Notes under the pieces: model-generated
Told to the model about the DNA's origin: nothing
Seen by the model: only the letters and a program-made list of their open reading frames with translations
Databases searched by the model: none
Shown: one piece after another, positions 1 to 26,917 of the stretch
Numbering within the stretch: position 1 is the stretch's first letter
How the letters are laid out: each line of letters begins with the position of its first letter
Position numbers and translations under genes: made by a program
Source of the DNA: Rhodosorus marinus CCMP1338
Taxonomy: Eukaryota > Plantae > Rhodophyta
Reading direction: 5' to 3'
NCBI GenBank assembly: GCA_029953675.1
Contig: JAMWBK010000009.1
Location: forward strand, 1,612,001 to 1,676,000
DNA length: 64,000 nt

Positions 1-28
1 CAGCTAGTACTTGTGTTGTGCTCTTCAG

Positions 29-3000
29 GTTGTCCCGGTCACTGTCGTGTCGGGAACTGATGACAACGCCAAGCGAGCTTTTATCGATCAACTTGTGACG
101 AGCCTGCCCAGCTTACGGATCTGCAGAGTATCATTGTCTAGCAGCAACGTTGCCCGTCAGAATGGCGAAGAAACCGCAGTGGGAGAGAGCTCCGCGGGGA
201 GCGATGGAGAGAACGGACCGGCGGCAGAGGGAGAAGTTGATGAAGTCGCAGAAGAGAACGGACATGCAGAACAAGAATCAGAGGTATGTCGTTGTTGCTT
301 CTGAGATATCCACGGGCTCATGTTCTTCTGTCGCTAAGTCGTGATGGTTTCATAACAGGCGCGGGTTCCCAGTGACACCGTAGTCGATTCCTGGCATCTC
401 TGCCAGTCATTACCAAGCGCGATGCAAGTATTAGAGACCGTGTCCCAATTGGACGGTTGTGATTATGTTATCCTTGAGACAGGTAGTGACGTGTCGGAAA
501 TGAAGGAAATTGCGTCGAAGATTACGATCCTTCAGACAGCACGAGTGGATGCGTTTGTAACTGTTGTGAACGCCGAAAACTTTCTGGATGATCTGAACAT
601 AAGCACAGAAGGGGACACGGTAAGTGCGCATGTTCCGTTTTCTGTAGCATACGTAGAGCTATGCAGAAAAGCTAAGAACCCTACTCGAGAAATAGTTTGC
701 AAAGACGGAGTCGCGAAGGAATTGCTAGGCACTGTGCTTGTTTCGGCTTCCTTAATTGTTTACTCACTCCCGCATGGACGCTTTGCAGGTAAATGAGACT
801 GGGGCTGGACAGAACTTGCAAAAGGCGACGAGCTTGGTGACGTACATCGAGAGTTCGAATATTATTATCCTTACTGCTCCAAACAAGACCGCGACGAACG
901 AGTCCTTGACCCATGTTGAAGGACTGATTCGAAGCCTGAACTCTACCGTAAACATCGTCGAACTGGTGGAGGCGAGCATACTTGCTGATGAGATTGTGAA
1001 TACGAACATGTTCGACATGGCAGCTTTTGGCACAGCCGCTTCCTGGAAACGAGTACTCGCTGTGAGTAAGGGTGCGTTTGCTTGAAAATATATTAGCTAC
1101 ACCTCAGCTGGGCTGCTTGTACACGTGCTAAAAACTACGAGTTCTTCCGAATCTGTTTTTCACGCTCGGTAGAGGCTGAAGCGGAAGAGAAAACTGTGAG
1201 ACCTCTAACCAAGGACCTCAAGGACTGCACCTTTTTGTATCAAGGCAAGAGACCTTTCCATCCGCAAAGGTTTTACGATAACATAAAAGACATGAGGACA
1301 TTTGCTGGAGTCATCAGGTCAATAGGTGAGTTGCGAAGGAATTTCAGGGGAAGGATGTTCCCTCCTTACGGATCGAGTTCAGATGAGACCTTGCAGAAAT
1401 CGCTGAGTTGCTAAGTTTTTCTCGCATTGAACAGGGCAACTGTGGCTAGCCACGCGGATGAACTATCCTCTTGCATGGAATCAGGCCGGGGGGACGATAG
1501 CACTTAAGCAAGGCGAGCGATTCTGGGCCTCCGTCCCGGAAGAGAAGTGGCCAGGTGAGATTAGGGATCTTGTACTTGCGAGATGGGACGAAAGGTACGA
1601 ATGCTGCGTTGATACTTGCGCAACACCCATGCCCCGTGTGGGTTAGGCTATGACCTTGCTGATGGATAGAATGCTCTTGACGCACGAAGGTTTGGTGACA
1701 GGGAGACGGAGATTGTGTTCGTTGGGAGAAACATAGACAAGCAGAAGCTGCAAGGACTCCTGGATAGTTGCCTTCTCCAAGATGAAGAGATGGTGTTCGA
1801 AAAGGCCTGGGAAAGCTTTGACGATCCGTTTGTGAACTTCGTACCACCGGAGGATGATATTGTTCCGATCGACGAAGAGGAACCGGAAGAATTCGACCAC
1901 ACTGCCGACTCCGAGGAAGCGGCTAAAGAAGTCCCGCAAACTAGCGATGATCCTCGTCCTGAAGTTACGGAGTCCGATCCATCTATTCAGGCGAGAGCTG
2001 AGTCGGACGGAGAAACGGAGGATGCGAACATAGCGGAGGAGCTGTCGGGCTCTAACCCGCGGAGTGAAGAGGGTTCGTGCTGACGCACGTACACGTTGGG
2101 GACTCGCACATCGAGCTCTTCCAAAATTTCTGTTGGTCCGCCTATCCTGACCCAAAGGTAATGGTCTTATCGTTTACACAGGAATTGTTGAAGACGTGTC
2201 ATCGGTGCCCCTGGAATTGTTGGAACGCATTTCGGAGTTGGACTTGCGGAAAGCCGAGTCCGACCTCCGCTTGAATCCACCCAGAAAGGAGTACGATGCT
2301 TCAGATGTTGTCATTGCGTCGGGGGATCAGCGCGTAGCGGATGATATCTTGAGACAGATTCCTAACCGAGGATTAGCTGTGACTGTGGTCACTGGTTTTC
2401 TCGGGGCTGGGAAGACTAGCCTAATTAACTATATTCTAACTCAGGTGAGCTGCGGCAATTGCGACCGTCGCTTGACTTTTACGAGTCTACTTAACAAGGC
2501 TCAATTCTCCGGCTTTTCTCTGCATCGAAAAGAATCATGGCATGAAGATTGCAGTACTAGTGAACGAGTTTGGCGAGATTGACATAGACAGTCAGCTCGT
2601 TGAAACGGAATGGGCTGATGACGACGCGATCCTGCTGAACAATGGATGTATTTGCTGTACTATTAATGACTCTTTCCTCGAAGCCGTCTATCGAGTACTG
2701 AGAAAGTCTTCAATGGTGAGGCGACTTTGGAGTTTTGCGGATCGGAAAAGGAGCCAGCTCGGCGCCTTGGTTGCTGATTGTACAATCGGTTCATACGTGA
2801 CTAGGTGGACTACTTGATTGTGGAGACTACTGGAGTTGCGGACCCGGTACCGATAGTTAACTCTCTTATGACGACGGACTTGGAGGAACTGGTATATGTG
2901 GATAGTATTGTCACGCTGGTCGATGCAGAACATTATGATCCTAGGACTCACATGAACAGCGATGCTGCTCTAAGCCAAGTTGCAGTTGCAGATATTGTAC

Positions 3001-3858
3001 GACTTCCCTACAGGGTCTGGAGCTGGATTGAACTTCTCTTTCTCACAGCGACCGTTTGTCCTCCAATCGCAGATTTTGCTGTCGAAAACTGACATCGCTT
3101 CGGAGGAGAAGGTGGAGAGCGTTGTTAAGAGCATCAACGATTTAAGGCCAGGAGCGAGGATATTGAAGAGCCAACACGGCGCCGTTCCTCTCGAAATGAT
3201 CCTGGACGTAAAACCGAAGGCTGTGTCTGAAGCTTCGGAAGTGGCGGGGAAAGTGCTTGCGGTGTACGAAGACGAGGGCCTTGATCATAGCGATTGCGAC
3301 CATGAGCATGGCCAAAGCAACCATGACCACGACCATGACCACGACCATGACGATGATTTCGATCATAACGACGAGTCGAAACCGACCCACTTTGAAACCG
3401 ACGGTTTCATGTCTACATCATTTCAGTGAGTCTGCACGGGCAGCGAGAAATTCAAGAACGAGTTTGAGCGATGGCAGCGAAGATTGACTTTCGTAATACG
3501 TGCGAATTGCGCTTAGGACATTGGAACCGTTTGATCTGGACCTGTTCTTTGCCCGGTTTCTTGACTGCTTGCCTCCTGGTGTGTTCAGATCTAAGGGCCT
3601 CTTGTATTTCAAGGGGTATCCAAAGCGCTATGTTTTCCAACTCTCGGGCAGAAGGTATCAGTTCGAGGAGGACGACTGGCCAGAGGATGTTGGGCAAAGC
3701 AACCAGGTAAGTTTTCCTTCGAGACTAGTTCTGTCAAGCACAAAACCGACGAAAGACTCAAGTTCGAGCTGGTTTCGCAGGTTGTGGTGATAGGAAGGGA
3801 TTTGGACATTGAACAGCTCAAGGGAATGCTCGAATCATGTCGTGCTAGTGCGGCATAA
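29..3858 (+). CDS. Tandem COG0523 (CobW/P47K, G3E family) metallochaperone GTPase fusion, multi-exon, 5' end outside window: degenerate YciC-like module + acidic linker + intact CobW/YjiA-like module
   Basis: Module 1 (29-2072): VPVTVVSG, DYVILET, VDAFVTVV, RPFHPQRF, GQLWLATR..WNQAG..FWASVP..WP..WDERFGDRETEIVFVG..LDSCLL (CobW_C). Module 2 (about 2350-3858): VTVVTGFLGAGKT, IAVLVNEFGEIDID, GCICC, ETTGVADP, SKTD, His-rich HDHDHDHD linker, RSKG..FQLSGRR. An in-frame GT-AG intron at 2073-2157 joins them. Confidence 0.88.
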
Positions 3859-4036: not shown

Positions 4037-4147
4037 ACTCCGCTAAAGAACACAAAAAAAAACCGTTTGCTGGAGAACAGGGAGAGCTTCCTTCGACTCC
4101 GCTAAAGAACACAAAAATTCCCCCGTTTGCTGGAGAACAGGGAGAGC
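4037..4147. repeat. Imperfect tandem duplication (about 60-bp period) between the convergent CobW and Pta 3' ends
   Basis: ACTCCGCTAAAGAACACAAAAA...CCGTTTGCTGGAGAACAGGGAGAGC occurs at 4037-4087 and 4096-4147. Confidence 0.85.
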
Positions 4148-4235: not shown

Positions 4236-7200
4236 CTACTTGGGGGTCAACGCCGAGGTGATTGCTATGGTGTTGACCACGTCCTGGACGGTTGCTCCAC
4301 GTGGGAGATCCGCGACAGGATGATCCATACCGAGTACAAGGGGACCAATAGCAGTAGCTTTGGTCGACTGCTGGACTGCCTTATACGTATTATTACCTGT
4401 GTTCAGGTCCGGGAAAATGAGAACATTAGCCCGCCCAGCAACACCATAGTTTTCACCCTTGACTTTCGTTTTCGCGACACTCGGGTTGACAGCAGCATCA
4501 TACTGGGTGGGTCCAAAAATTGGTACATTCGGTCTCTTCTCCCGCGCGAGTTTTGCGGCGGCCGTTACCTACGGAAAGGACACAACTTTTGAGACTGAGC
4601 TCTCCAATAAGCGGTTTGCGTTCCCGGCGGAGTTTCGCACGTCTAATGATTGCGGAGAATCTGGATAATCGGCTCGCCTACCTTTTCAATTTCAGGACCT
4701 TTGTTGCTGTCCCCAGTTGCGTAAGAAAGCATCGCAACCCTCGGCCGGAGGCCAACCCTTTCAGCTACATCGGAAGCACGGATAGCAATTTCCGACAACA
4801 ACGTTGAATCAGGATTTGCGTTCAGAGCGCAGTCCGCATAAATGAGGACTTCCTTATCCAGGCACATGAAGAACACTGAGGTCAGGTACTTTCCTGGTTT
4901 TAACATCAACTTCTTCGACGATAAAATCTGAGAAAAGAACCAGTCGAAAGGAAGGATTTTAGATTCTCTCGACAGCTAAGGTTCCTGACTTGTGTGCAAC
5001 GAAATTGAAAGTGCATCACGCTACCGTTCCCCTGGTCGGACGGTTGATTCCGCCAACAAATCCATCCGCATCCCCGTTCTTAACCATCATGGCTCCGTAC
5101 CAGTACGGATCCAAAAGTGTTTCACCAGCGATTTCCTCCGGAGTAGCAGGCCAGTACAGACTCTTATCAAAAATGTCCGCGTACTCGTCAAACTGGAAGG
5201 GGGGGGACAAGGACGCTCTATTCGTTCAATACCTCGCATGTAGTGTCGTCCTTTCGCAATCATCTACCTTGGGGCTCGTATGCGGATTTACAATCTCTAT
5301 GCCTCTGCTTTGCAGGCCAAGAGAAGCTATCCGCAGATTGATACCGTCAACATCCCCAAGCAATGTAAGTCGTGCGAGTTGCCGACGACACACTTCGTCG
5401 GCTGCCAACAGGATTCTATCGTCATTGACCTCGGGTACTACAATGTGGGCCTCCTTCTGCCTCGCAAGGGAGTTGACCTGGTGAAGGAACATCTTAACGG
5501 AAATGTGCTCCAGGGGTTTCTGTACGCCTGAGAGGAGTTTGTCCGTGTTGACATTCTCGTTGAACAATTTGATTGATCTTTCCACCTTCAAAATAGACAC
5601 GAGTCTCGTTCAGATTATTTAGACAGCTGAACTTTTAAGCTTGCTCAGGTCGGGCCAAGCGCGTACTTTGCCTGAGTACGCGGTCATTTTCGTTGGTAGC
5701 TGCTCCAAACGATCCACCAGCTCGAGCGGTTCGATATCTGTTTCCAGAACTGGTACCTTCATGAGCGCCATGAGAGCTGGTGTATCGCTTATCGTTTTTA
5801 GTGTGCGTTCTGTGATGTCACTACTCGACTTGCCGCTCAGAATTATCCCTCCAAGCACGCCACCTAGAATCGCGCAGAGGTCTTAGTCAATCAGCCGCTC
5901 AGTGGATACCTCCATGTCAACCTGTGCTTGCCAGTTCTTCTCGTGCTGACTTACCATATTTTCTCGTTGCGTTCAAAGAGGTGATGGCAAGAACAATGTC
6001 CACTCGGTCTTTGGCGGTAATGAGCAGAAACTTGGGAGGTGTGCCTTCTAAATCAGACTCAATCACAAACCCGTCCATATCCGCATCTATTTGATCGACC
6101 ATTGCAATAATCATTTCTTCTCTGAAGGTTGGATGCAGCAAGCTGATAGCCTCTGCAACCCGATCATTTGGCAACCTGTGATCTACGAAGAGACGGGTAC
6201 ATCCAGTTTGTGGGCATGGTAAGTCTTCTCGTTACCATCTTCAGTCGAGAGACGAGCAACGTGGGAGAACTATCCCGTTCGTACCAGGACCCTGCGCTAT
6301 CTGTTCCGTGATCATCTTCTTCAGTTCTGCCCTACTTCGATCTATCGCAACCACTGGATTGTTCTCCACTCTATCGATCATCGTATCGATTCGCTCTGAT
6401 ACGATTCTGAGATCATCTAGGAGCAGAGGTACGTCCATGCCTTTCCCCTCTCCAAAGACCAAGTTGGCTTCCAAGCCCTCCAGGATATCGCGGAACATTA
6501 TCGAACGTAGGTAGCCATCCAGCGGAATCGAACCAAGGATTGGGACCTTGGTCGCTTTTTCAACGTTGGCCTTCTCAACATCAAAGTCTGGTGCAGCACT
6601 CGGATAGCGGTTAAGGATCACTCCAAGTATGTCCGGGTTGTGTTGCTGTAGCACAAGCAGCCTTTCCGATAGCAATCGAAATTTAGTGCGCAAATCTAGC
6701 ATGTTATCAGAAAAAGAGTTCCAGCGTCTGATTTTAGGTTTCCAAGCATGTGTTGATGGGAGCCGGTGGTACCTTACCATCAGATTCAGCAATAGAAGAA
6801 TTATCTCTGCCATCGCTTACTAGTACCACGGACGCGCCGATGGCGTTTGCACAGTTCATGTTGATCTCATTATTGAGCTCCTCACTAAAGTTTGTGCTGT
6901 TGTAGCCCTCGACTACAACAAAATCGTAGTCTTTTCGGAACTCGGAGAATCTACTAGCAACCATTTCATTGAGAGTTTCGAAATCTTTCTTGTTCACCAG
7001 CCTAATCGCTTCCTCGACGCTGCATCCATTCTGGACGCCGGTGTCGAAAATTGTTTCCACAAGGCCCGTGTGCGTTTCCTTCAAAACATCAAGAACACAT
7101 GAATCAGAGCGTCGACCATTGCCAATTCCCTTGTGAGCTTGGATAGCCTATTACCGTCGGCGCACGTGAAGCGTGCTCGATTACTCGAAAGTAGCCAACA

Positions 7201-7403
7201 GACCGCTGCTTGGTCTCCATGAGTTTCATAGTCCCCAGAAGAACTGGGACAGTATTGCATCTTGTAGACGATGGCTGGAGGAATATTGAATTCCTCCCCG
7301 TCGAACCAGCAAACTCATCAGTAGAGTAACAACGACGACGAATCGTCGGAGTGAGCCGGATTTCCGTCAACCGCCAACGACCAAGCCAACGAAGGCCGAT
7401 CAT
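4236..7403 (-). CDS. pta: Long-form phosphate acetyltransferase homolog (BioD-like N-domain, DRTGG-like region, PTA_PTB domain), multi-exon, probable mitochondrial presequence, active site degenerate
   Basis: ATG at 7403 with Arg-rich MIGLRWLGRWRLTEIRLTPTIRRRCYS. SVGYFRVI; DYDFVVVEG; GDADG; SVFFMCL..YADCA; RVAMLSYATG; QYDAAV; VLIFPDLNTGNNTYKAVQQS; TAG at 4236-4238. Confidence 0.9.
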
Positions 7404-19145: not shown

Positions 19146-22100
19146 ATGGCTGACGGACAGGAAAAAAGTGAGACCCTTGAGGAGCTTCGTGCGCTCATTC
19201 CCGGGACGAAGTTCGGAAATGATGTGAGTAGACCCGAGGTTTCCTAACCTCAAAACTTTTCACCAAACCTGCGTTTCCGTATTTCCCTGGTAGATTGTGC
19301 TTGTTGGCTTTGGTTAAAGTTCCCTATTAATAATCGGTTGTCGTTCTTTGGCAATAGGCGAGCACAAACCGCACCACGCCGGCTGCAACCAGAAGACCAG
19401 CTTCGCAGAAGATGCAGCCCGAGATGAGATCCGCTGCAGGGTTGCATCAACAGGTAATTTGGAAATGGTTGGTTGAATTTGTGATCATGTGTGTGGATCT
19501 AAGCTGTAGGTCATGTGCTTGACTGACTGCAATAGGCTTTTCCGGCTCAAGGCATGGGCACCGGCCCGCCCGCAATCGCACATCAAACGGGAGCTCCTAA
19601 CAATGTAAGTGATACTCGAGCTTTCCGCTTTGGTTCCAGTCCGTCTGGAGACCAGTTGTTGCCGCACTTGTGAAACCTGGTAGCAGGCAGCTGACAAAGT
19701 ACGTGTGACAACGCCTGCTTACACAGAACCCTTCGAACGGAACCGAGAAAGAGTTGATGGCTTTGATCGATTCTACGAAGAAAAGAGAACCGAGTTCCGG
19801 TGCGTCTAGGAACGTTGACGAGTTGAAGCAGTTAATCGGGAATACAAAAGCGAGAGCGGCCTCTGCTCCTGGCTACAGTGCTCCCACGGCGACGAGAGCG
19901 CCAGCAACCAGCCCCCAGAGCGGGAGGAGGACTCAAGCTGAGGTCTGTCGTTGCCCTACACTTCATAGTCGTCCTAAGCTCAGGTCCTCACACCTACCAT
20001 GGTCCACGTGTGCATTTACGTAGGGCGCTGGAAGCACTGCGGGCGAACTTTGGTCCTTGATTGGAGACAATAAGCCCAAAAAGGAATCGACTTCAAGCAC
20101 TTTGGCGGAGCTGAATGCTCTTGTCAGCAGCACGTCTGCCTCGGCTGCGAAGACGGGGACCAGACCAAGCAATTACAAAAAGCCGCCCACTCCCACTGCT
20201 CAGCCGGTGACGCCCCATAGTGCACCAGTCCAACCCAGAAGTGCTACAGCCCAACCCAGAAGTGCCACAGCCCAACCCAGAAACGCTGCTTCAAAGCCTG
20301 TAAAGAGGGTTCGGGTAGGCCTTATTTGTGATTTTCGCAATACTTGGCGGGCCTTTGCGGATCTTGCTCATGTCCGTGATGACCTTTCTCATGTGGCCTG
20401 AGCAGAAATGGACGAAAAACTGCGAAGAATTGCTAACGCGGATTCGAAATTTAAACGCGGCCCCAAGAACAAGCGTTCAAACAGCAGCATCTGGCCCAAC
20501 CACGGTTGCCAAGCCAGCTTTAGGAAGACCCCGTCAGCCGTCGAAGGCTGAGTTGAGAAGTTTTCGAAGTAGGAAAGTCCTCCCAGTTCTCAGGATGGTT
20601 GCCACATCTGGATTTTCAAAGTTTATTCCACTTGCGCGCACCCTCAAACAAGCTATTCTTCCTCCCAACAACTTGCAGTGCGAAGTGGGAATGTTGATGA
20701 ACTTAGGAGGAGGTTGGGCCTGCCTCCCATGAAGTGGGACGTTAGTCCTCAGGTGCAGAGTGCTACTAGAAGTATGACCCAATTCATTCAATCCTCGGTG
20801 TTCTTTTCTTGCATACGCTTTGCGGCGCAAGTACTAACAGTGACTCACTCTGCGCAGGACCACCACAAGGCAGTCTTGAAGCATTCTTGCATTCAGTGGT
20901 GTACAAATACAAACAGAGGATTATGTCGTCGACTCGAGATGACAAGGAGACCACTATTCGCGCTTTTCAGACTCAGGTTCAGCAATTGTTTAAAGAGTAT
21001 AGGACAGGTCGAATGCCCAGTGACAAGGTACAAAACAAGGGAAGAAAGTTTCGTATCTGGTCTGATGTTTTCGTCGCTCACTGCAGTTGGCGCAAATCTT
21101 CTCGACTATTTTCTGTTCGCCGAATCTAGGTTGTGGAAGTCGTTTGTGGTAAAGGCCGCGAGATTGGTATGCCCGAGATAGATACAATGCGGCAAAAGTG
21201 GTATGCGAATGCAAAGGAGAGAGCCGCTATGGCAGGCGGCGCAGTAGGCAAAGCGAAAGGAACGGAAGCGGCAAAACCGGCAGAGACCCCAGCAGCCTCG
21301 GATTCCGTCTCGGCGGGTGCTGCGAATGTCCCGGAAGGAAAGCCAGCGAAAGGTCGCGGGTCGATTGGTTGCAAGAAGGGTAGGTTGGAGCTCGGGCAAG
21401 CAGGCCAAATGACAACCTTGTGAATAGTTGGCGGAGTGTTATTTTGTTGCCCTCTTGTCTAATACTCTTTTTGCAGCTCCAGCGCAAGAACCTAGACAGG
21501 CAAACGGCAAGGTTGGAGAAGGGACACCTAAGCGGACCACGAAGAAACCCGGGGTTGCAAATGTGCCTGGTGCGAAGGCGACTACCGGTAAGGCGACCGC
21601 TACGAAAGCGACCGCTGCGAAGGCGACGGCTGCAAAGACTGCTGCGAAAGCGACTGCCGCAAAGACTGCTGCGAAAGCGACTGCTGCGAAAGCGACTGCT
21701 GCGAAAGCGACTGCTGCGAAAGCGACTGCTGCGAAAGTGACTGCTGCGAAGGCGGTCGCTGGAAAGCCGATAACTTCGAAGGCGACCGCCGCGAAAGCGA
21801 CCGCTGCCGCGAAGGCGGCTGCGGCAAAGTCTGCGAAGGCGACGGCTTCAAAGTCGACACCGAAGAACACTCCTTCGAAGGCTACTGCGGCGAAGTCCTC
21901 TACTCCGAAGCCGAACCGAGGCTCGGCAAAATTATCCGCTGGTGAAGCGAAGTCCGCGGTACGTCGCAGACAAATTGACTAGGCACTGTTTTATCTGTGA
22001 ACTCATATTTGCGTACACCATTGTAGGAAAAGACGCCGGCAACACCCGTGGAATCGGAGGATCCTGCGCTTGTTGAGGAAGATCCTCAGTCCTGGGTAGT

Positions 22101-25787: not shown

Positions 25788-26850
25788 AGACTTTTGAACA
25801 GCCAACTTCAGATTGGTCGGACAGACCTGCCTATGGAGTGAGTTAAATTATCAAGTCCTTAACATTCGACCATCTGCAGTGAGCTTTTCTTTCACATACA
25901 AGCTAAGAACGATTTTTTCTTTTGAGTTAATTAGCTACCACCGCCACTTTCGAGTCCATTCTTCATTTCCCAATCCCAACTGGACTCAACGGCCTCCGCC
26001 GGAATTTGATCAGATCCAACTCCACAGGCGCAACTCAAATGTCATATGACCAATTTGCTTTGATCCTTTTTTGGGGGGGGGAAAACCGAAATCACGTTCA
26101 ATAAATACAATCTAAATGATATCAACCCGCGGACTAAATAAAAGCCATTGGCCAATTAAATTCCAGTTACCTGATCGGGAGTCGGTTTTGACCAATCATC
26201 GTATAAACAAATCGTGCTCCTCAACAACGATTCGATAAGCATAGCCGTGCAAATATTTTTGATATTCAAATATGATCGCCCCCTGAGATATTATTCGTCT
26301 TCTCTTTCAACTTGTAGCTCAGGGGATGAAAACACATAAAAAACAACCTACGGTTATTATTATTTCCACAAAAGCATCAACTTCGATGAACTCACTAAAA
26401 CAATCCACCCCTTTACTAACCTCAACGTCAGAACATTAAAAAACACTTAAATCTACGACGGATATTTTCCTTCAAAATTATTTAGTCTTTTCTTAAAAAA
26501 GCGATAAAATCGATTAGCGAATCAACGAATGGAAAAATCCACGAAACCGGTGGCGGACGGTAACTTTAATATTGTCATTAAATAATCCGCAAATCCTTGT
26601 TAGTCCCTGTTAGATTACTTCCGAAACAAGGGTTTTTCGTAGACCGCCTTGAGTACCACACTCAAATTTGGTTATTTTAAGATCGATTTTGTGCGTATTT
26701 TCGGCGGGTTATATTAGGCAATAGAGGGTTTTAGGGTTTTTAGGGTTTTTGTTTTTGTTTAAGTGTTTTTTGTTTTTTTTGGGTGGAGGAAGAAAAAGAC
26801 TGAAGTCCGAAAGTTTGGTGAGAGACTCTGTGTGCGGGACCCCGCACAGA

Positions 26851-26878
26851 GAGAGAGAAAAGACACACACAGAGAGAC

Positions 26879-26912
<34 letters not shown>
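26851..26912. repeat. (GA)n/(CA)n compound microsatellite upstream of serA
   Basis: GAGAGAGAAAAGACACACACAGAGAGACAGAGAGACAG followed by a (AG)n run. Confidence 0.9.

Positions 26913-26917
<5 letters not shown>

Follow-up and report, generated by a model that had tools for sequence, protein, structure and literature searches.

A phosphotransacetylase-like protein of the red alga Rhodosorus marinus, expressed and conserved despite substitutions in its CoA-binding and catalytic loops

We analyzed a stretch of 64,000 nucleotides (64 kb) from Rhodosorus marinus CCMP1338, a red alga of the class Stylonematophyceae (contig JAMWBK010000009.1, positions 1,612,001 to 1,676,000 of the forward strand, assembly GCA_029953675.1). 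This whole stretch is called the window below, and all positions refer to it. At 4236-7403, on the minus strand, lies a gene for an 816-residue protein that resembles a long-form phosphotransacetylase (Pta). Our main finding is that this Pta-like protein lacks residues whose mutation kills bacterial Ptas, and yet is conserved and expressed. An exact-sequence look-up identifies the gene as NDN08_006951, whose product (KAJ8902548.1) is annotated as 'hypothetical protein'. In eukaryotes the Pta-Ack pathway is patchy, and most studies of it concern green algae and oomycetes; our literature search returned nothing relevant on Pta or Ack in red algae, on a Pta pseudoenzyme, or on a Pta carrying an EF-hand.

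The gene model, rebuilt from three reading frames, comprises nine coding exons (7403-7155, 7078-6778, 6695-6285, 6182-5955, 5863-5667, 5585-5268, 5192-5025, 4927-4682 and 4568-4236) separated by eight introns of 75 to 113 nucleotides, all GT-AG and in frame, and it ends with a TAG stop codon at 4238-4236. The GenBank protein (P0002, 758 residues) is identical to the model from Met59 (7229) onward. Starting instead from the ATG upstream, at 7403, brings in an Arg-rich extension together with the conserved beginning of the AAA_26 region (7403-7230), and four MMETSP transcript products of a second Rhodosorus strain (P0004, P0007, P0008 and P0010) begin at this upstream Met. Since the first 58 residues hold that conserved beginning and the transcripts use the upstream Met, the longer model is preferable, with GenBank probably placing the start too late; the PTA domain is unaffected by the choice. 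The Arg-rich extension itself, about 30 residues long (MIGLRWLGRWRLTEIRLTPTIRRRCYST..., 7314-7403, minus strand), lies outside the GenBank model and is a putative organelle presequence, 70% identical between the two strains versus 90% for the protein overall. It is the sole basis for the mitochondrial location that the original prediction, made from the letters of the window, had put forward.

Pfam recognizes the parts of a long, type II Pta: an AAA_26 (dethiobiotin-synthetase-like) domain at residues 56-244 (PF13500, E=8.6e-16; 6514-7238, including introns 1 and 2), a DRTGG-like segment at residues 371-451 (PF07085, E=0.087, below the curated cut-off; 5700-6033, including intron 4), and a PTA_PTB domain at residues 494-810, in exons 6-9 (PF01515, E=4.9e-92, covering profile positions 1-318 of 319; 4257-5492), all on the minus strand. 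A KDRVDIVLA motif aligns with the DRTGG segment of relatives. This three-part architecture and most structural motifs are shared with the long-form Ptas of E. coli, oomycetes and green algae. By sequence, the closest solved structure in HMMER is 7T88, the C-terminal domain of E. coli Pta (245 bits, 44% identity), followed by the Ptas of Bacillus subtilis, Porphyromonas gingivalis and Methanosarcina thermophila, with the PTA domains of the malic enzyme MaeB far lower, at about 141 bits. In an AlphaFold (AF2) model of residues 336-816 the PTA domain is confident (predicted local distance difference test mostly >85), and its best Foldseek match is again 7T88, with a target-normalised template-modelling (TM) score of 0.92 and a root-mean-square deviation of 2.2 Å. 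As modelled, the full-length PTA_PTB domain is intact in its two-lobed Pta fold.

Active-site positions are given here in M. thermophila Pta numbering, with equivalences taken from HMMER alignments to solved Ptas including 7T88 and 6IOW; the numbering was anchored on P. gingivalis 6IOW, in which the published R89 and R135 are chain positions 93 and 139. In Ptas, Arg87 and the RKxK loop contact the 3'-phosphate of coenzyme A (CoA), Arg133 contacts its pyrophosphate, and Asp316 is the proposed catalytic base. Three key changes in these loops had been predicted, with residues and coordinates that proved correct. Where solved Ptas and relatives have the ELRKxKG loop for the CoA 3'-phosphate, the Rhodosorus protein reads KSLYWPA (5165-5145, minus strand); Leu580 (CTG, 5159-5157) occupies the Arg87 position, and the second basic residue of the RKxK loop, a Lys, is also gone, the loop reading LYWPA. 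Across intron 7 (positions 4928-5024) the sequence GGINRPTRGT|ILSS (4919-5042) places Leu626 (TTA, 4924-4922), the second codon past the intron, at the Arg133 position; one HMMER alignment moves Arg133 by one residue onto Ser627, and Arg stands at neither position. An arginine, Arg622, is found four residues upstream, in PTRGTIL. The catalytic loop PVADLPRGATVQD (4281-4319, minus strand), which reads ADLPRG in place of NDLSRG, has Pro795 (CCA, 4304-4302) for Ser309 and Ala792 (4313-4311) for Asn306. The Asn306 change was absent from the original list, as were Pro134 to Ser627 and His126 to Arg619. Several residues of a competent Pta are retained, namely Asp307 (Asp793), Arg310 (Arg796), Asp316 (Asp802) and Thr128 (Thr621), so that half of the Ser309-Arg310 pair is kept; the neighbouring Arg and Asp had rightly been noted as present.

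To determine how unusual these residues are, we used an exhaustive HMMER search over 1.84 billion representatives and took the best 150 matches, none of which, among the matches listed, is closer than about 36% identity. The census set of 150 comprises 148 of the 150 listed matches together with P0002 and the second-strain protein P0004. A metagenome scan with the single protein as query found no match; with an alignment as query it was dominated by bacterial Ptas of 41-48% identity, which supplied a second census of 80 further Pta loci. Position 87 is Arg in 146/150 proteins of the first census and 79/80 of the second (225/230), and Ser309 and Asn306 are each present in 143/150 and 80/80 (223/230). 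No otherwise intact relative among the 230 departs from Ser309, the exception, P0016, being itself eroded. Over the 75 family-conserved columns (at least 93% conserved), Rhodosorus is off consensus at 11, where the median relative is off at one.

Arg133 behaves differently. It is Arg in 124/150 and 76/80 proteins, leaving 30/230 without it, and because about 13% of otherwise canonical relatives lack this residue, often with an Arg at minus 4, its loss is not diagnostic. The losses of Arg87 and Ser309, to which Asn306 must be added, are therefore the significant part of the predicted triad. An Arg four residues upstream, as in TTRETIL, occurs in 6/25 relatives without Arg133 versus 2/124 with it (odds ratio 19, p=3e-4), and the Rhodosorus PTRGTIL has the same configuration. 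This suggests that Arg at minus 4 is another way of positioning the arginine that binds the pyrophosphate; the 'loss' of Arg133 is then likely a recurrent natural variant in which the arginine has shifted, and Arg622 may replace it. In long Ptas generally, the absence of Arg133 covaries with the upstream Arg, in the form TTRETI[LTS], which bears on the scoring of Arg133 as 'essential' in annotation.

The substitutions are not confined to one assembly. The 90% cluster of the protein includes 12 MMETSP transcript products of another strain of Rhodosorus, among which P0004 (814 residues) is colinear over its full length, 90% identical overall and 92% in the PTA domain. Four fully spliced products (P0003, P0004, P0011 and P0012) read ...RGT|ILSS... 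over the exon 7/8 junction, as well as ...FDKSLYRQT... and ...LVADLPRGATIQD..., so that in the second strain the Arg87 and Arg133 positions are both Leu and the catalytic loop reads ADLPRG. Neither RP nor SRG is restored by splicing or by base differences, and sequencing error was rightly judged unlikely from the outset. The remaining MMETSP isoforms (P0001, P0005-P0010 and P0013) keep intron 2, 4 or 7 or use an alternative exon-3 donor; in each of them the protein is cut short, either ahead of the PTA domain or inside it, and they reflect either regulated splicing or the assembly of unspliced RNA.

A 1361-nucleotide genomic contig from run SRR32518362 spans exons 3-6 and is colinear with the window, with gap-free exons 89-91% identical and gapped introns 70-87% identical. 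Over its 339 codons (exons 3-6) the ratio of nonsynonymous to synonymous substitutions by the Nei-Gojobori method, dN/dS, is 0.17 (dN 0.052, dS 0.31), and it is 0.12 in exon 6 alone. A value below 1 had been anticipated, and purifying selection on the gene is supported. Within the PTA domain the strains differ at 28/354 positions, mostly at family-variable sites: mean family conservation is 0.50 at strain-variable positions versus 0.65 at invariant ones (Mann-Whitney p=0.006). The exceptions are three consecutive changes in the former RKxK loop, WPA versus RQT, and Pro790, which is 99% conserved in relatives, lies two residues before the catalytic loop and is Leu in the second strain. Variation that otherwise follows the constraints of the fold, with hits at the RKxK loop and at Pro790, fits relaxation at the old active site.

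The likely effect of the substitutions can be read from published mutants. In P. gingivalis Pta, R89A (Arg87) loses 58% of specific activity and keeps 42%, R135A (Arg133) loses 21% and keeps 79%, and D318A (Asp316) has 11% of wild-type activity, while D309A (Asp307), S311A (Ser309) and R312A (Arg310) have no activity at all (PMC6461089). In M. thermophila, variants at Ser309 and Arg310 alter kcat, and those at Arg87 and Arg133 alter Km (summarised in PMC6461089). Since S311A is dead and the arginine mutants keep 42% and 79%, it is Ser309Pro, and not the arginines, that carries most weight; together with Asn306Ala it is the substitution most likely to remove catalysis, and without the RKxK loop the CoA nucleotide should bind more weakly.

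The original prediction had pointed to MaeB as a precedent for a non-catalytic PTA domain used as a sensor. MaeB (PDB 6ZNG) does have a PTA fold in which catalysis has been given up for another role, and its target-normalised TM score to the Rhodosorus model is about 0.87. The residues involved, however, are reversed. In MaeB, the 3'-phosphate of acetyl-CoA is held by R535 and K538 and its pyrophosphate by R581, acetyl-CoA binding is abolished in the variants R535A and R535E (at the Arg87 equivalent), and inactivity is due to changes at the Asp316 and Ser/Thr128 positions; the TME of Sinorhizobium meliloti, which is without these basic residues, is insensitive to CoA and acetyl-CoA (PMC7902834). 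The Rhodosorus protein, in which Pfam detects no malic-enzyme domain, retains the residues that MaeB has given up and lacks those that MaeB retains, so that the analogy is inverted and an acetyl-CoA sensor of the MaeB kind is unlikely.

Similar erosion was seen in just two other proteins among the best 150. One, P0033, is Porphyridium purpureum KAA8493511.1, with Glu for Arg87 (a call ambiguous by one residue, as an Arg is present one residue upstream) and Glu for Asp316. The other, P0016, is a transcript-like contig from JGI sample 3300016809 (organism X, red-algal-type), with His for Arg87, Lys for Arg133, Pro for Ser309, Glu for Asp316 and Asn for Gly311. Their PTA domains are just 44-46% identical to that of Rhodosorus; the Arg87 loop is lost in all three, and all three have the EF-hand-like insert described below. 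The expectation that related algae would carry the same substitutions is borne out entirely by the second strain and, for Ser309Pro, by P0016, but not by P0033, which keeps Ser309, Asn306 and Arg133. Beside each eroded copy stands a canonical Pta: P0026 in Porphyridium and P0021 in JGI sample 3300016809.

The insert is a 12-residue loop, DADMDGFVIESD (residues 353-364; 6052-6087, minus strand), about 20 residues upstream of the DRTGG 'DRVDIV' motif, and it fits the pattern D.[DNS].[DNS]G.[ILVMFC]...[DE]. Among about 150 long Ptas, a loop at this position is found only in the Rhodosorus proteins and five relatives, namely two Porphyridium genes (P0026, starting at residue 371, and P0033, at 443) and three JGI transcript-like sequences (P0016 at 457, P0021 at 343 and P0149 at 363). 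The Pfam models EF-hand_1 and EF-hand_6 reach their curated cut-off in P0033 and stay below it in P0026 and P0016; DADMDGFVIESD itself has no Pfam match, and AF2 confidence is low in the region. The distribution of the loop suggests a calcium-regulated Pta lineage and, with it, calcium control of acetyl-CoA/acetyl-phosphate metabolism.

The two halves of the Rhodosorus protein do not tell the same history. Calling the eroded P0016 and P0033 lineage A and the canonical P0021, P0026 and P0149 lineage B, we find that the PTA domain groups with lineage A at 95-100% neighbour-joining bootstrap, a result robust to gamma-corrected distances and to removal of conserved columns; when lineage A is taken out, the domain moves to oomycete Ptas and never to lineage B. 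The N-terminal half groups with lineage B (62% overall, 83% in the group-specific insert, and 77% without lineage A), and its best BLASTP matches are P0026 and P0149. Derived states held in common with lineage B only are N-terminal in 11/13 cases, and those with lineage A only fall in the PTA domain in 5/6 (Fisher p=0.0025). A clean recombination breakpoint could not be placed, as A-only and B-only sites interleave over residues 501-704.

Gene order sides with the N-terminal half. The convergent neighbour of the Pta-like gene, on the plus strand at 1-3858 and cut by the window start, encodes a CobW/COG0523-type GTPase (CobW_C-cobW-CobW_C); its end at 3858, 378 nucleotides beyond the Pta stop, is deduced from annotation rather than read directly. 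The same tail-to-tail pair recurs at P0021 of organism X and at P0149 of organism Y (JGI sample 3300016707), both members of the EF-hand-bearing group with canonical catalytic loops, and at neither Porphyridium Pta gene; it thus ties the Rhodosorus gene to lineage B. The B locus may have received its A-type PTA domain by inter-paralog conversion; differences in rate, combined with differential loss of tandem copies, may instead mimic a mosaic signal, and neighbour-joining trees on about 40 sequences cannot decide between the two. The rest of the 64 kb contains neither another Pta gene nor a remnant of one, and no ackA lies next to the Pta-like gene, which is flanked by genes for CobW, DHO dehydrogenase and WD40 proteins. 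When the window protein or P0026 was the query, full-length word-index searches returned nothing beyond the query's own cluster. A PTA-domain search with P0026 gave about 8000 bacterial or metagenomic Ptas and no red-algal entry, not even P0026 itself, and is uninformative on a second Rhodosorus pta.

A repurposed or impaired Pta, as the original prediction proposed, remains the best reading of a gene that is real, expressed, conserved and under purifying selection. The form we favour, with about even confidence, is a protein derived from Pta and kept by selection, with Pta activity low or absent and a non-catalytic role, either as a regulatory subunit or as a sensor of phosphate or acyl phosphate. 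The PTA domain would keep its fold and its phosphate/acyl-phosphate side (Asp307, Arg310, Asp316 and Thr128), having lost the Ser309 hydroxyl, which would stabilise the transition state, and the basic RKxK loop, which would hold the CoA 3'-phosphate. Judged by the mutagenesis of orthologues, interconversion of acetyl-CoA and acetyl phosphate at a useful rate is probably beyond this protein, and its role is probably non-catalytic. It could act as a regulatory or scaffolding subunit, given that Pta domains associate as dimers and that long Ptas assemble into hexamers by way of their N-terminal halves; the protein might instead bind phosphate or acyl phosphate as a sensor, with the degenerate EF-hand-like insert in its regulatory half. 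Three points weigh against this reading. The retained Arg310, Asp316, Asp307 and Thr128 would be needless in a pure scaffold; they make residual or altered catalysis possible and are the chief reason to think that some chemistry, or at least binding of a ligand at the phosphate site, survives. Losing the arginines alone has mild effects in P. gingivalis Pta, and in the Rhodosorus protein Arg622 may stand in for Arg133. Finally, the DNA-based dN/dS covers exons 3-6, and the altered residues sit in exons 7-9, where the protein has diverged by 8% at a dS of about 0.3, so that constraint is probably similar.

The strongest competitor, which we regard as possible though less probable, is a working phosphotransacetylase with altered kinetics; its Km for CoA or acetyl-CoA would be raised and its kcat lowered, with Arg622 serving for Arg133 and another group or water for Ser309. 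It would account for the four retained residues and for the strong purifying selection across the PTA domain, and it draws on the activity kept by R89A (42%) and R135A (79%) (PMC6461089), on the finding of the Arg-at-minus-4 layout in otherwise canonical Ptas, and on a locus where two related organisms carry canonical Ptas. It has to face the inactivity of S311A (PMC6461089), the fact that Pro supplies neither a hydroxyl nor a backbone NH, and the near absence of departures from Ser309, limited among 230 relatives to the eroded P0016; Asn306 is lost as well, and the otherwise invariant neighbour Pro790 varies between strains. A transacylase that discarded the CoA-nucleotide site and kept the acyl-phosphate site, using a non-CoA thiol acceptor (a phosphopantetheine carrier or free pantetheine) or another acyl phosphate, seems improbable to us. 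The losses do cluster on contacts to the CoA 3'-phosphate and pyrophosphate, with phosphate-side residues kept, and PlsX, an acyl-ACP:phosphate transacylase, is distantly related in structure to PTA_PTB; but loss of Ser309 would harm any thioester/acyl-phosphate exchange of the same mechanism, there is no positive sign of another substrate, and the gene neighbourhood is uninformative. That the gene is in early decay, an expressed unitary pseudogene still free of stops, is largely refuted and very unlikely: catalytic residues are lost and many MMETSP isoforms are partly spliced, but against this stand the dN/dS of 0.17, exons free of indels beside introns that have diverged with them, a PTA domain conserved at 92% versus 70% for the presequence, and variable sites that follow family constraints. 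An artefact of assembly, annotation or splice modelling can be set aside as refuted. Apart from the probably misplaced GenBank start nothing speaks for it, and it conflicts with the GenBank protein, identical from Met59, with the transcripts of an independent strain, which agree in these residues and span the exon 7/8 junction, and with the colinear SRR32518362 contig.

Beyond the single gene, we tentatively suggest that the EF-hand-bearing red-algal-type Ptas include an undescribed group of pseudoenzymes beside canonical Ptas. In such a group Ser309 and the CoA 3'-phosphate loop would have been lost repeatedly, in favour of organellar sensing or regulation linked to acetyl phosphate or phosphate, with a calcium input through the EF-hand, and Rhodosorus would carry an eroded domain at the ancestral CobW-linked locus, behind a regulatory half of canonical type. 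If true, this would amount to inter-paralog domain replacement, possibly leaving Rhodosorus with no working Pta. Should the Rhodosorus protein be a pseudoenzyme, it would show that the PTA fold has been put to a new use a second time, independently of MaeB and with the opposite residues retained, and would help to separate ligand-sensing from catalytic residues. Automated annotation labels any PTA_PTB protein 'phosphate acetyltransferase', but at least some copies from red algae or red-algal-type organisms lack residues whose mutation kills bacterial Ptas. Reconstructions of metabolism may therefore be wrong where they assign Pta activity to Rhodosorus or to one of the two copies in Porphyridium.

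Several repeats were also seen in the window. Between the Pta and CobW genes, in the convergent intergenic or 3'-untranslated region, 4037-4147 is a two-copy tandem duplication of about 60 nucleotides, with exact blocks of 22 and 25 nucleotides lying 59-60 nucleotides apart. In the CobW gene, a 12-nucleotide repeat at 3320-3351 (plus strand) encodes a His/Asp-rich stretch, HDHDHD..., near the C-terminus of the protein; such stretches are typical of COG0523 metal chaperones. Farther along, 21567-21807 holds 16.5 copies of a 15-nucleotide tandem repeat (CTGCTGCGAAAGCGA), and 26848-26913 is an (AG)33 microsatellite.

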